Shown here: positions 6,959-14,300 of the stretch, in pieces | Position numbering within the stretch: the stretch's first letter is position 1 | Layout of the letters: each line of letters opens with the position of its first letter | From: Mizuhopecten yessoensis | Taxonomy: Eukaryota | NCBI RefSeq assembly: GCF_002113885.1 | Contig: NW_018407191.1 | Coordinates: 520,744-584,743 of the forward strand | Length of the DNA stretch: 64,000 nt | Direction of reading: 5' to 3' | The notes under the pieces: model-generated | Told to the model about the DNA's origin: nothing | The model's input: only the letters and a program-made list of their open reading frames with translations | Databases searched by the model: none | Translations under genes and position numbers: made by a program

Positions 6959-7697
6959 AAACAAGAGGTCCATTGGCATTAACGGTCACCTGAGTTCTGA
7001 TATATTTATACAAAGAGTTGATTTTAAAACATAAACATAAATATTATTCAAAGTGACAAAAAACAATAAAACCACCTTATTCAATATCTAGCATACAGAT
7101 TTAAGATTGAAAAGTATTTGAAACTAGCACCTCTGATTCTAAACAAAGAAAATGAAGAAATTTTAGCACACTGACTCGTTTGGGCCCCGCCCTACAGCCC
7201 TTGGTGGTAGGGCTGGCTCAAAATGTTCAAAGTATCAAACTTTCTACTCAGGGTTATAATTCCAATCAAGTTATCAACATGTAATATTCAAAGTATCATT
7301 TGCCATTATAAACCATAATATATTTTGCCACCCCCCTTCCCCAGGGGTAAACGTGAGACCCTAAGGTCATAAAATTCACAATTTTGGTAGAGCACCTTAA
7401 AACCCTTCAATCTTTAAAGAGTATTTGATTCTACCATATCTAGGTCTTGAGAAGAAGATTTTTGAATTATTAGTCAAGTTGACCCTTTTTTGCCCCGCCC
7501 CTCAGGCCCCTGGGGGCTGGGGACCAAATTCACAATTTTGGTTAACCTTCGGCCATGAAAGGTTTCTGGAAAATTTCATTGAAATTGGTTCAGGGGTCGA
7601 AAAGGTAAATTGTTTACGGACGCACGACAGACGACGGACAACGACGGACAAAAGCCGATCGCAATAGGTCACTTGAGACTTTGTCTCAGGTGACCTA
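6959..7697 (+). mobile_element. Non-autonomous Helitron/Helentron-type element (HINE-like)
   Basis: Starts AAACAAGAGG; subterminal GGTCACCTGAG at 6984-6994; GACGAC/GGAC microsatellite at ~7620-7650; terminal hairpin TAGGTCACTTGAGAC-ttt-GTCTCAGGTGACCTA at 7665-7697. This layout is typical of mollusc HINEs. Confidence 0.7.
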
Positions 7698-8702
7698 ATA
7701 AAAGAGGAGAAGAATACGAATGGACAGTCCCAACAAGATATCGTTCCCATTTGAAGATACATTGTGTTGCTCGGCCTTTTAAACACAGGACAATGCAAAT
7801 ACCAAGTACAATATCACGCCAAATTCATTCGGAACTCCTCCGCTCGATAAAATGACCGTGCCTAAAGTACATGTAATTATATAATCCCGTGTATACAGAA
7901 TTAAGTCCCATGTAAGCTTTCAAGCAAATTACTTCATAATAGATATCGACTCACAGTCTACAGATGTCCGCAACCGTTACACTTTTTTGATGTAAAAATA
8001 ATAAGGATCCCAACGTAAAGTAAGGTGTGTTATAGAAATGCGATAGTTCTTATTTGGAATGCTTAAATACACAGTCTGTAATATCAGTATTTCTGAAAAG
8101 TATCAACTTGTCAAATCTTAAATGGAGTACCGTAAAAGCAAATATTAATACAATTAAACTTGCTACGGTTTGTGTTTTGACTTAAAATACGAAGAGAGAG
8201 CTGCCTTCTTGATATCTTATCTATAATTTCTTACATTTATGGTGTTCGAACCTAGTTAGAGAATGTTAAGTGGAGATTTAAAATGCGTTTTTCTAAAAAT
8301 ATTTTATAGTTTGCTGAAAAATGATCTTGTGTATCATTTAGTAATTTGAATCCCACGTATAATGTTTGTTTTTAGGTTTTATTATCTTATTTATTTTTGC
8401 TTGAATGTCTTATCAATCTTTTGAAAATATTCGAAGTACTATAAGCTTAATGGAAACATTGAAATTACGTAATTCATATTTTATGAATACATGAAATATG
8501 TATATTATTTTATATATAAATCGATTTTTGTATTTGTAGATAGAAAACAAACCAATAATAAGAAAACAAACGAAACGTATTATTCAAAAAACGTTGTTGA
8601 AAAGTGAGATTATGAAAGTCTACTCAAGCTTTCAAACCAGAGAAAACCTTGACCTAGATAAGCAGAGCTGATTGTATGATAGTGGCAGAGTAGAAGGAAA
8701 GC

Positions 8703-11365
8703 ATGGCTGCCAAATATGCTATAGTCTTAACACTGATTAGTTTTTGTTCTCCATGCGTGGCGGCGGAGTGGACACGCGAGATTCAAGAGAAGCTGGTCAA
8801 TGTGAGAAGTGTCACATTTCTAGTAACTGTTAATGACACGTGGGATCCTAAGTAAGTACAAATCGTCATATCCGGTTTAGAGTTTGAAACAGAAGACGTG
8901 AATTCATTCAAATTTCCAGCAAAGTCAACGGTTTGGCTGTCGATATTATAAGTATTTAGTGTATTTTTTGTTTGTTCACTAGTGGATGCATTGCAACGGT
9001 AAAAACACCTCCTCTAAAACCGAATGTCAAATACAACCATACGGAGCAGATTCATGTTGGAAGCTGTGATCACGGTCCATTGGATTTTCGGGTTTCGTCT
9101 CTCAACGACAGTGTGAATGCTATGGTACGTGTAAGGAACATAAGAAACTATATACAAAGCATTAGAGAGGAGTCTTCATTTCACATGAAATAGAAACAAA
9201 TTCAAGATCCTCTCTATCACAATTGTGCTAAATCTATTATTCACAGCATAATATAACAGTCATGCGATATCACCTGAGTTCAGTAAATCGCGATTATGTA
9301 TCAATATATATTTAAAACAATTTATTTTGTTTGGCTTTCTGCATAACTACATTAATTTTGTATATATGTTGTTTTTTTTGCTTTTTTTAATGTCTGGTGA
9401 TTATTTTGCGCCACAAGGTACATTTTTAATTTCCAAAAAGACGCTTACCCTTCCTGAACACCTGGTCTCAACTGTTTGTCATGTTCGAAAAGTCTCCATG
9501 TAAAGCTTTCATTTGTTAATGTCTTTCCCTACTTTTTTTTTAATTTCGAGTTCGATTTATGGTTTTGTTCATACTTCGATAATTTCTTGCTTTTGTGTGT
9601 GTGTCGTTGTGTTGTATTTAACACATGACGTAGTATGTGACGTTTTAGTATGTTGAGTTATTTTACTGATGAGTGTGACGTATGTGCGTCAATATGACGT
9701 CAGGTTTGAATGATGAGGTATTCTTCACTATTATACTGAATAAAAAAACCGCACAATTACATTATGCAATCAATAGCCTATGATATTTTTTGTACAAAAT
9801 TTTATATTAATATGAAGGGACAAGTCTACTCTTTACAATACTATAAAAGAAAATTCTGTGTGACGTCACTCGTGTCATCAGTAGTTACTAAAAGAGTGGG
9901 ATACCCGCGAAAAACAAATTGACACTTCAGTACCTGGTGTGTGCACCTTTTGCACGTATCCCTGCATGAATTCATGAGAACATTTATTCGCCTTAAGGAA
10001 ATGTTGTTCCATCTTGTGTTAAAGCTGCGATCAACTGGGCGCGGTTNNNNNNNNNNNNNNNNNNNNNNNNNNNNNNNNNNNNNNNNNNNNNNNNNNNNNN
10101 NNNNNNNNNNNNNNNNNNNNNNNNNNNNNNNNNNNNNNNNNNNNNNNNNNNNNNNNNNNNNNNNNNNNNNNNNNNNNNNNNNNNNNNNNNNNNNNNNNNN
10201 NNNNNNNNNNNNNNNNNNNNNNNNNNNNNNNNNNNNNNNNNNNNNNNNNNNNNNNNNNNNNNNNNNNNNNNNNNNNNNNNNNNNNNNNNNNNNNNNNNNN
10301 NNNNNNNNNNNNNNNNNNNNNNNNNNNNNNNNNNNNNNNNNNNNNNNNNNNNNNNNNNNNNNNNNNNNNNNNNNNNNNNNNNNNNNNNNNNNNNNNNNNN
10401 NNNNNNNNNNNNNNNNNNNNNNNNNNNNNNNNNNNNNNNNNNNNNNNNNNNNNNNNNNNNNNNNNNNNNNNNNNNNNNNNNNNNNNNNNNNNNNNNNNNN
10501 NNNNNNNNNNNNNNNNNNNNNNNNNNNNNNNNNNNNNNNNNNNNNNNNNNNNNNNNNNNNTACAGCAGTCTTGAATCTGTTGCGCAAATGCGACAATCGA
10601 ATCGCCCTGTCTTGTCCTGCGGTCGTTACACGCGGACGACCGCTCCTGGGACGATTGGAAACTAACCCAGTACATGTAGCACGGAAACGTGTACAGAGAC
10701 GGTTAATTGTACGCGGGCCAACACCAAACTGCCGTGCGACAGCAGTTTGGCTATGACCATCCATCAACATCGCAATTGCTCTACCCCTCTGAATTTGCGT
10801 TAAGCGTGGCATCTCAGTCAATGGCGAAATCAAAATGCCAACTTGGACAATTAATGTGGCTGAACTTTGAGTATCCGTTGAGATTATTTGTTTGAAAAAC
10901 TCCGGCTTGGCTTGATCACGCCTCTTGATTCGGACTAAAGAAGCTCACAAAGTCACGCAATGACATCGTCACGCTTGGCTGATTTTAGGGTAGATTGTTG
11001 AGAAGAGAGATCGTTCTTGATGTAATACCTGACCAAATATTCCATTATTACCTTACAGCTAAGGTGTACTGCAGGGGGGAACTTTGTGCGTTTCATTTTT
11101 TTTGTTCAGTATATATTAAAGGTTGACGTCATTTGACGCGTTTTACGTACATCTGTTGTAGACTGTTGACTTAGTGTTCCACTCCTCCGTAGTAGAAGAT
11201 GCTGATCCCCCTGCCTGTAGTATTGGATGGAACGGTACCTACCTCGTTCCCCGGGCTTCAAATATACCAGACCAGTCCCTGCTCCCGGGCTGTATGACTG
11301 GTGACTCCAGGGAGGGCTATCACATGACTTACTACTGGTTCCATATTTTGGAGTGGTCTTTTTAG
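8703..11365 (+). CDS. Uncharacterised secreted glycoprotein, 164 aa, 3 coding exons
   Basis: Exons 8703-8851 (AA|GTAAGT), 8983-9124 (ttcactag| ... ATG|GTACGT) and 11162-11365 (ttgtag| ... TAG) join in phases 2 and 0 with no stop. N-terminus MAAKYAIVLTLISFCSPCVAA resembles a signal peptide. Four mature Cys, four N-X-S/T sequons, and AATAAA at ~11379. Confidence 0.8.
9734..11111 (-). mobile_element. Tc1/mariner transposon, decayed, spanning the assembly gap; in intron 2 of the secreted-protein gene
   Basis: TIRs TACTGAATAAAAAAACCGCACAA and TTGTGCGTTTCATTTTTTTGTTCAGTA, flanked by TA. Transposase starts at 10812 (MPRLTQIQRGRAIAML...VARQFGV...RPRSGRPRVTT, Tc1 HTH plus GRPR) and ends GAHTRY* at 9927 after a frameshift. 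Confidence 0.9.
10047..10560. other. Assembly gap (514 N)
   Basis: Run of N. Confidence 1.
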
Positions 11366-14300
11366 TGATTTTGTTTTGAATAAACATACTGTAAACAAAC
11401 ACGTTTTTGATCCGACTCATATTTTAGCACATTATTACGTTTTCGCAGATGAGTGCAATGATGCAGTCGCGTACGATTCATGCAGTAACAGTTATTTATT
11501 GAAACTCCAATTCACGCAGTTATAATTTAGCGCAATATAAAGAGCGCGGAAAGCGCTAAATTCAAAATACTGTTATAATATGTTACGTATGCAGTATGTT
11601 CCTTGCTTTGAATTATTTTATATCTACAGATGTATCAAGTAGAAAATAAAGTTGATTATGACATAGAAGATAGCGATTCCTCAACGAAAGATGGTTACAG
11701 GTTTTAATACAGGGTAAGTATATTAACCAAAATATACCTAAAACTTAACCGAAACATTTCTGCACGGAGTGCAACTTTTGCTTAACAAGCTGGAAATCAA
11801 TTTCATATAGGAAGGCATATCCCTTTATCATAAACTATTTAATGCATTCATGAAGTTCCCACTACACAATAACTTCGTGATGTCTGCTCTTAATATGAAG
11901 AACTGTCATCTATGTATTAATTTTTAATAAGGGGTGACATGTACGTGAAATCGTGTTTGCTTCCAATACATTTGGTGAATTACTGAAGAGGTGTTAAATG
12001 TATTGTGTTGTGCTGAGTATTTTAAATTCCAGTTTGCACATATTTGTTTTTAAGTTTCAGACTTTTAGATTGGTTAACATACAATGTTGATGCAATGTTG
12101 GAATATGGTATGCTTTGAACATTATCACCTGACCTTTTATAATTAATACAAATGCCAAATGAAAACAGCAACAACCATGAAGCAAGATTGCTGTTTTCTA
12201 GAGACCACCAAGTACGATATTTGGATTTTTATGGCGGTTCAACGAAGAAACTACATGTATATGCTCTTCACAGATAAGAATATCGGATGAACAAAAGATA
12301 ATTCAATTCTGTTGGATAACATTTATTGAAGAACCATTCTTTTTAAACAACCTTACATTTGACAACAATTTTGGGTCGAAATCGCTCAGAAATGTTCCGC
12401 AACAACAGAATGTTTTATATATAGCACTGCGGTTGAAATCAATAACAATGAAAAATACGTCAATTTAATATGAAAGTATAAATAATTACTGATCAATATA
12501 ATTCATAGATTAACATTGAAGGAGTAACAAAACAGCACGTTATCGTCGTGGTTACCGAACTGGTATAAAATAAAATACTCTTACAGAAACTGTATTCTCC
12601 CAACGTTTGGTATTTTTGTTTTGTTTAGTTACATCAGCGTCATTATCTTTGATGGAAGAAGAACTCAAGTTTAGGATATATGTGTGTATCAATACGAAAA
12701 ATGCTTATTAATAATGGATTTCCTTTCCGCCAACAAAATACAGTTTTACATTATTTTCCGTAGAAGAGTTCAATCTACTAAAATTCACATACTGAATTTC
12801 TTCTTCCATTCAAAGACTATGGAGAGATGTTTGTATCGCACACCAATCTTTATTTAATTTAAATTGCTTTGTTACCTTCAAAATACATCATATCCAGTTC
12901 GGATGTATTAGTTTAATCTTATATGCGTTTTTAAAGCGGTGTATTGACCGTCTTCTGTCGTTTACTTCCACTGGGATGTCTATACCAGTGGTCTAACTCC
13001 TCAACTGTGGTCGGGAGCTCACGGCCTGATGTCTCGGACAACAGAGGTAAAAGTATCGTCACTGTTAGACACATTATTCCAAATACTGCACCTGGGGCCC
13101 AACTTACTCTTTCAGCCTGAAATATCACAAACGTTCGCAGTATATTATTTATCTTATACAAATACTAATAAATGTGTGGATGAGTTAAGGAATGTATATG
13201 TTTACTGTGAAATATGAGGACGGAATTGGTGTGGAGGTTTTCCAACAACAAATGCGCACTTATTGTTTTGTTTACGCTTCGGTATATCTCAGTTGCTCCC
13301 TTATGCATGGAAGATTGTATAACCCCTTTGAGGTTCTGATCAGAAACAAACTGCTTGCCCCTATTTGAAGATTCATTTTTAAAAATAATTGTGGTCTCAT
13401 GGAACTCACTTACGATAGCTGATGTGACAAACTTCAGAAAATGTTCAATCGTTGTCATTTGATATTATTTAAAGAGTTATAAGTACAAAGGACACAAATA
13501 TGTTATATTCAAACAATCTCATCAGTGATGATAGTTTTACAACAATGAAAGACAAAAAGGTCAAAAGGAATATTCCAATTAAGGTTCAGAGATAAAGCAA
13601 TGCTCAATATGTACCCACCAGTGGACCAGCAAACGGTGCCAACATTCCACCAATTCGTCCAGCAGCGGAGTTTTAATTCCTACGACGATAATGCAAAAAT
13701 AAAAGGTATGAACAGTGCACCCGAATTGAAACTAGAAAATAGTTGCCCTGTGTTAACGAACTGCTGCCGGGTGTCCACGAATAAATATTTCCCTCGTCTC
13801 TACGGAATCGTAGTGCATATATGTAGCTATTGACATTCTTGCTAAACCAAACATTGCTACTTTTATCAGAGTGGTGTATTCAATATGTATACAGAAAGTA
13901 TCACGTAGGAATAGTCATTCGCAAATATTTCTTCAAGTATGATTTGATATGTGTAAATTTCCGTTTCGTGATCTTTTTGTAATGAAGATGTTCAATGTCG
14001 TACGACACGAAACAAAATAATTTGCGAAAAAAAAACTATTTAGAATATATACACGGGATCTTCCACCCCATGAATCTTGGTAAAATCTATAAAGGGATTC
14101 AATCATTGAAATCTTTCAAATAATTTGAGCTTTATTAAATATAAATAGCTCTTTTTAGAGATACGCGTCAACAAATTTTAAAGGGCAAAATAATAAAAAA
14201 AAACACAACAACACCCCAACTCGGGTAGTCTCACTAAATCACGATCCTGTACTAAAATATATAACATGCCTTCAACATGTAGTATGCATGGAATAGTCAG

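Follow-up and report, generated by a model that had tools for sequence, protein, structure and literature searches.

The 64,000-nucleotide stretch of the Yesso scallop (Mizuhopecten yessoensis) genome considered here (contig NW_018407191.1, positions 520,744 to 584,743 of the forward strand) is called the window, and its own numbering is used throughout. At 8703-11365 it contains LOC110454209, which is an ordinary, expressed, three-exon protein-coding gene. Its product is a member of an old family, as yet without a name, of small glycoproteins predicted to be secreted and to fold as beta barrels. The features of the locus are listed below; X1, X5 and X11 are assembled transcript runs.

8672-8702, plus strand: minimum 5′ untranslated region; the transcript contigs start at 8672 (X1), 8686 (X5) and 8696 (X11), and the true start site may differ
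8703-8851, plus strand: coding part of exon 1 (49 codons plus AA), with the start codon, a signal-like segment, a linker of variable sequence and strand 1, which includes the VNDTW motif and the N44 sequon; three runs use the donor GT at 8852 (GTAAGT)
8703-8765, plus strand: signal-like segment, amino acids 1-21
8852-8982, plus strand: intron 1, 131 nucleotides, GT..AG, phase 2; joint 8851^8983 in X1, X5 and X11
8983-9124, plus strand: exon 2, preceded by AG and followed by GTACGT; strands 2-4, C52, C78 and the GxCDxGP motif
9125-11161, plus strand: intron 2, 2037 nucleotides as assembled, GT..AG, phase 0, including an assembly gap at 10047-10560
11162-11365, plus strand: exon 3, preceded by AG; strands 5-8, SSVxEDAxPPxC, WNGTY (the N121 sequon), LLPGC, the DSREGYHMTYYWF strand and the stop codon TAG at 11363-11365
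11379-11384, plus strand: AATAAA, a putative poly(A) signal seen in the DNA letters only; the transcript contigs end at or before 11323

A first-pass annotation, made from the letters of the DNA, had proposed three exons spliced in phase, and all of its coordinates hold, with the exon translations and transcript contigs from three studies in agreement. Transcripts were compared with positions 8600-11450 in X1, X5 and X11, one run from each study, and in one raw RNA run (X20). The runs were picked as coming from the same organism and as containing about half of the words of 8650-9200, which is the share that spliced RNA should give. In each of X1, X5 and X11, a single contig spans exons 1, 2 and 3 in consecutive record coordinates, with zero letters in between; the joints are 8851->8983 and 9123/9124->11161/11162 (both GT..AG, the second with cut +1). 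These are the two junctions, 8851^8983 and 9124^11162, that had been named beforehand as a check on the gene. Because the GT..AG joints are exact, genomic contamination is excluded as the source of the spliced contigs, and the structure, transcription and splicing of the gene are established.

The three exons encode 49, 47 and 67 residues, and a codon split between exons 1 and 2 (AA|T, in which the first T of exon 2 completes AAT) supplies Asn50, for a total of 164 amino acids. When searched separately as translations, all three exons are 100% identical to the RefSeq entry 'uncharacterized protein LOC110454209' (P0093), at residues 1-49, 51-97 and 98-164; that RefSeq protein was used for the full-length analyses. 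The description of the gene as hidden was therefore mistaken, since its exact model is already public. The accompanying remark that exon 1 is absent from the open reading frame track is correct, and has a simple cause: the exon-1 frame is 50 amino acids long and falls below the track's floor of 60. The AATAAA lies 13 nucleotides past the stop codon, where the poly(A) signal had been placed. An alternative donor at 9131, which would add the residues VR, is in frame in the DNA as had been noted, but is used by no contig, although contigs can miss rare forms; two extra residues at the exon 2/3 joint occur in no orthologue.

Homologues and their taxonomic distribution had been named as a further check, and homologues extend from Capsaspora to amphioxus. 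A whole-library HMMER search, with a profile built from the exon-3 translations of the gene and of its paralogue LOC110454260, returned 92 cluster representatives (64 at an expectation value (E) <= 1e-10), and a full-length profile returned 102 matches. The named members, with phmmer and hmmsearch E-values from 1e-91 to 1e-28, come from bivalves (Pecten, Argopecten, Ylistrum and oysters), gastropods (abalones), a chiton, Lingula, Saccoglossus, Glandiceps, three Branchiostoma species, and the sponges Amphimedon, Dysidea and Corticium. Members are also present in the choanoflagellate Salpingoeca macrocollata, in marine metatranscriptomes and in Capsaspora owczarzaki, the last with an hhalign probability of 99.8 and an E-value of 9e-28. 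Membership of the scallop protein in this family is thus established. None of the named matches is a vertebrate, arthropod, nematode, cnidarian or echinoderm protein (the metagenome and Logan matches are not placeable by taxon), and the family appears, from its sequence relatives, to be restricted to Holozoa, ranging from Capsaspora and choanoflagellates to amphioxus.

The first-pass annotation could not place the protein in a named family, and the databases agree. There is no Pfam match for the three exon translations or, at E up to 10, for 87 members, a sequence-profile search of the PDB gave only a chance match (E 2.3), and no paper was found by the locus and accession identifiers or by the motif strings of the family. 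The claim that the gene was the best candidate for new biology in the window is accordingly correct in part: the family is still unnamed, but about 100 homologues are already public as uncharacterized proteins, with no function shown. Two metagenome members carry the JGI name 'secretion-regulating guanine nucleotide exchange factor', which we reject as a stray automatic label; the proteins are 83-155-residue copies of the same domain.

Conservation across the family is highest in the C-terminal DSREGYHMTYYWF strand or hairpin, the same strand that had been singled out as unusually aromatic. All of the family motifs (VNDTW, GxCDxGP, SSVIEDASPPxC, LLPGC and DSREGYHMTYYWF) are found in the LOC110454209 product, with column conservation of 0.9-1.0 at key residues. 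Columns at least 90% conserved are C52, C78, D79, G81, F103, S105, A111, P114, C116, P127, L138, P139, C141, S146, E148, G149, H151, T153, Y155, W156, F157 and W162. The four cysteines of the mature part (C52, C78, C116 and C141) are invariant or nearly so, and are probably paired as C52-C78 and C116-C141. Four N-x-S/T sequons had been counted in the product, and all four are present, at N44, N68, N91 and N121. Two of them are conserved: about 85% of members retain N44-x-T, and about 65% retain N121-G-T/S. At position 68, Asn is found in about 60% of members, and about 70% have Ser or Thr at the second residue after it.

The secretion that had been proposed is supported by a signal-like hydrophobic segment at the N-terminus. 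Its hydrophobic 9-mer has a Kyte-Doolittle (KD) value of 2.7, and small residues occupy positions -3 and -1 for cleavage after A20 or A21. In a hydrophobicity scan of 84 full-length members, 66 have such a segment at the N-terminus, and only 1 has a membrane-like stretch further on. Because the N-terminal segment, the cysteines and the sequons all point to passage through the secretory pathway, we infer that the product is secreted, with a cleavable-looking signal peptide at about residues 1-21.

An AlphaFold2 model of the scallop protein, built from an 87-sequence alignment, has a predicted local distance difference test score (pLDDT) of 89.4 and a predicted template modelling score (pTM) of 0.80. 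Its elements are the signal helix, a further helix (residues 17-31) and, within residues 36-163, eight antiparallel strands, in keeping with the earlier description of the protein as beta-rich. The Capsaspora member, modelled independently, has the same eight strands with pLDDT >90 over the domain, and the predicted fold class is that of both models. The first-pass annotation had named Foldseek as a means of finding a characterized domain, and none was matched: for the scallop and Capsaspora models there was nothing in the PDB at E up to 0.001, and LolA-like matches appeared only at E above 0.1. A further comparison was made with VIA-align against 48,161 representatives; with this tool, a model that lacks any true relative usually peaks at Z 7-8. 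The top matches were secretin sheets, followed at Z 4-6.5 by NspA, OmpA, de novo barrels, the TbpB/HpuA/hemophilin barrels, Cap15, avidins, the CcsBA periplasmic domain and LAMP domains. We conclude that the domain, as modelled, is an up-and-down eight-stranded antiparallel barrel or a strongly curved sheet, without a demonstrable relative among solved structures. Matches in the ESM Atlas (bacterial clusters at 0.87, one of them labelled 'putative copper-binding', and an aegerolysin at 0.78) were below the tool's noise threshold and were not taken as evidence.

Two questions arise from the predicted fold: (i) whether the family resembles any known class of protein; and (ii) what the conserved residues of the domain might do. 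With respect to the first, there is a resemblance in overall design to small eight-stranded ligand-binding barrels, such as the Cap15 C-terminal barrel, avidins, the lipocalin-like GrlR, de novo DFHBI-binding barrels, and the barrel domains of TbpB/HpuA/hemophilin. These are similar in size (about 110-130 residues) and have the same up-and-down arrangement of eight antiparallel strands, and about 100 residues superpose at 3.5-4.2 A; however, they have no sequence similarity to the family, and their Z-scores of 4.3-5.6 are within the tool's background. They also lack the two probable disulfides, the predicted N-glycans and the long conserved loop 121-139 of the scallop family. The lipocalin, avidin and fatty-acid-binding calycins gave no Pfam match at E up to 10 in the 87 members, and in structural superposition avidins reach Z 4.2-4.3 and fatty-acid-binding proteins Z 3.0-3.2, as against the background of 7-8.

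LAMP domains are luminal or extracellular, heavily N-glycosylated beta domains of about 160 residues with a beta-prism fold, in which disulfides close two loops between neighbouring cysteines. The LAMP domain (PF01299) aligns with both models at Z 5.2-5.4 over about 100 residues, and over all comparisons at Z 4.1-5.4 across 94-101 residues, with a root-mean-square deviation of 3.6-4.0, which is not above background; unlike the scallop family, LAMP domains have more strands and are followed by a membrane anchor. The PF01299 profile matches no member of the family, nor do the profiles of the ML domain (PF02221) and ependymin-related proteins (PF00811). The secretins and outer-membrane proteins (InvG, GspD, NspA and OmpA) are the top structural matches (Z 6.2-7.8) and share long twisted antiparallel hairpins with the models. 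They are, however, membrane proteins of bacteria, with barrels that are giant or embedded in lipid; they are 2-9% identical to the scallop protein and are alike in strand arrangement only. No Pfam Secretin or OmpA match was found, and the scallop protein is eukaryotic and is predicted to be glycosylated and disulfide-bonded.

With respect to the second question, we propose that the protein would be secreted and would act as a small extracellular binding barrel, carrier-like or lectin-like. The polar and aromatic cluster formed by D79, S105, S146, E148, H151, T153, Y155 and W156 would bind a metal, a glycan or some other small ligand, which would have stayed constant across holozoans. Weak structure matches to small eight-stranded barrels recur (Cap15, the de novo ligand-binding barrels, TbpB/HpuA and avidins) and were counted in favour of this proposal. 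Several observations weigh against it. The best VIA-align scores, Z 7.4 and 7.8 in the wide search with the two models and 6.5 in a second look with the scallop model, are at background level, and each comparison returned the same generic set of meander sheets and barrels; because the structure matches stand at that level, the case for a binding barrel is one of fold class and conservation pattern. Apart from the stray label mentioned above, every source name is 'uncharacterized' or 'hypothetical', and no member of the family has a tested function. Finally, the raw RNA run X20 has zero reads on the exons, from which it follows that expression is not ubiquitous. We offer the binding barrel tentatively, as a suggestion from fold class and conservation that falls clearly short of even chances. 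The explanation as a whole, namely an expressed gene that encodes a member of an unnamed holozoan family, with a secreted binding barrel as its inferred function, we consider likely to be correct.

It is also conceivable that the domain is a small secreted enzyme, with D79, S105, S146, E148, H151 and Y155 acting catalytically on an extracellular substrate common to holozoans. Between Capsaspora and amphioxus the polar residues are very strongly conserved, a pattern seen more typically in catalytic or cofactor sites than in carrier pockets, and there are weak structure matches to barrel enzymes, namely DynF and the Diels-Alderases PloI4 and Cyc15 (Z 4.4-5.0). These matches, however, are at noise level and are accompanied by no sequence similarity to Pfam or PDB enzyme families; moreover, the domain is small and its conserved residues lie largely within strands. 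On balance we regard an enzyme as unlikely.

Another scenario is that the protein works through protein-protein contacts, as a secreted signal, as part of an adhesion system or matrix, or as an obligate oligomer; the doubly conserved aromatic last strand would then be the interface. Strand 151-157 is conserved on both faces. The existence of two-domain tandem forms (P0157 and P0158) and of mucin-like or cysteine-rich N-terminal extensions in some members is in line with such a role, but there is no known partner, the fusions carry no informative domain, and secreted signalling ligands are rarely so conserved between unicellular holozoans and animals. A contact role of this kind strikes us as improbable.

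The tandem forms are natural, come from Logan contigs and are about 315-319 amino acids long, and P0091 of Mactra antiquata has a Ser/Thr-rich repeat extension; these forms may bear on oligomerisation or mucin-like presentation. A Pfam search of 10 longer members found no informative fusion domain.

A membrane-attacking or immune effector, that is, a pore-former of the aegerolysin, secretin or outer-membrane-barrel type, is very unlikely. The idea arises because secretin sheets and eight-stranded outer-membrane barrels head the structure matches (Z 5-7.8) and because of the aegerolysin cluster in the ESM Atlas, but all of these scores are at or below background. The hydrophobicity scan gave no amphipathic membrane-spanning pattern, and a slowly evolving protein with two copies per genome, predicted to be glycosylated and disulfide-bonded, is unlike the fast-evolving, expanded families of effectors.

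The weakest alternative, to which we attach next to no probability, is that the open frame arose by chance, or that the locus is a pseudogene or an artefact of annotation disrupted by the assembly gap; a gap of uncertain true length and a transposon do lie within the locus, but the exactly spliced transcripts from three studies, the intact frame, the orthologues of equal length, the strong purifying selection and the intronic position of the gap all speak against it, and it is refuted by the spliced transcripts together with the identity of the exon translations to the RefSeq protein. The run of N at 10047-10560 sits between exons 2 and 3. Because the contigs join 9124 to 11162 with no intervening letters, the gap is wholly intronic, hides no exon and leaves the frame independent of its length; it is therefore harmless to the gene model. 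The orthologues in other scallops are likewise 164 amino acids long, with no insertion or deletion at the exon 2/3 joint. The gap is enclosed by a mobile element:

9694-11132, minus strand: Tc1/mariner-like transposon copy inside intron 2, with its right end 29 nucleotides from the acceptor
9694-9748 and 11097-11132: inverted terminal arms of the transposon
10561-10833, minus strand: N-terminal transposase piece matching transposase-type helix-turn-helix (HTH) domains (HTH_28, 1.8e-8; HTH_Tnp_ISL3 and HTH_Tnp_IS630, weaker)

Splicing is still exact with the transposon ending 29 nucleotides upstream of the exon-3 acceptor. Reads that fall on the transposon are only 95-99% alike and so come from other copies, transcribed elsewhere.

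A side observation concerns the palindrome TGACGTCA, an octamer resembling the cyclic AMP response element (CRE), which occurs 11 times in the window versus 0.74 expected from shuffles:

9695, 9861, 11124, 16770, 16795, 24302, 28167, 30476, 33761, 41970 and 45466: positions of TGACGTCA

Two of the three copies in intron 2 fall in the terminal arms of the transposon, and for this reason a repeat family, and not regulation, may account for the excess. Intron 1 of the paralogue LOC110454260 also has two copies.

The paralogue lies outside the window on the same contig:

G000:C3864:490339-494436: LOC110454260 (P0114), 163 amino acids, tandem copy, about 37 kb upstream of LOC110454209

It lies about 26-30 kb before the start of the window, and it too has three exons, with introns at identical places and in identical phases (2, 0). 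Between the two genes the proportion of differing synonymous sites (pS) is 0.80, which is saturated, while that of nonsynonymous sites (pN) is 0.33; the duplication is therefore old, and purifying selection acts on both copies. A maximum-likelihood tree places each paralogue in a separate clade with the matching orthologues of Ylistrum, Pecten and Argopecten (support 100/99 and 100/98), and deeper nodes are poorly resolved. Because each copy has its own orthologue clade, the duplication predates the four scallop genera.

A whole-genome profile search found the two family genes and two small contigs, and nothing more at gene level. One small contig (G000:C80208) duplicates window positions 7661-9807 at 99.2% identity and carries 237 inserted bases relative to window position 9437, and the other (G000:C80960) duplicates 11035-12858 at 98.3% identity; both stop short of the gap. 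Judging from their identity to the window, these look like unmerged allelic duplicates. Below gene level, a 28-residue match to the conserved C-terminal strand (G000:C5572:303213-303299, minus strand; E 0.31) contains internal stop codons and may be a decayed fragment or a chance match.

The gene itself is nothing new, its exact model being already public; the interest lies in the family. From a unicellular relative of animals to amphioxus, its last 25 residues are almost unchanged, and it has no Pfam entry, related solved structure, paper or tested function. Only a minority of families are so conserved and yet so blank. A new Pfam family could reasonably be proposed for it, though it is not surprising in kind. 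Since the domain is small, confidently predicted and easy to express, a structure and a ligand screen could assign its function quickly.

Finally, we note that the patchy distribution of the family points to a role in a physiology that is ancestral and mostly marine. A more far-reaching possibility is that the domain is pre-animal, present in the ancestor of Capsaspora, choanoflagellates and Metazoa, with a barrel topology that has no true relative among solved structures, and that its invariant cluster of Asp, Ser, Glu, His, Tyr and Trp residues binds a specific cofactor, metal or glycan extracellularly. Taken in full, this is a doubtful proposition. If true, the family would represent a new extracellular binding or catalytic module, one that vertebrates, insects and nematodes have lost and that marine invertebrates have kept.

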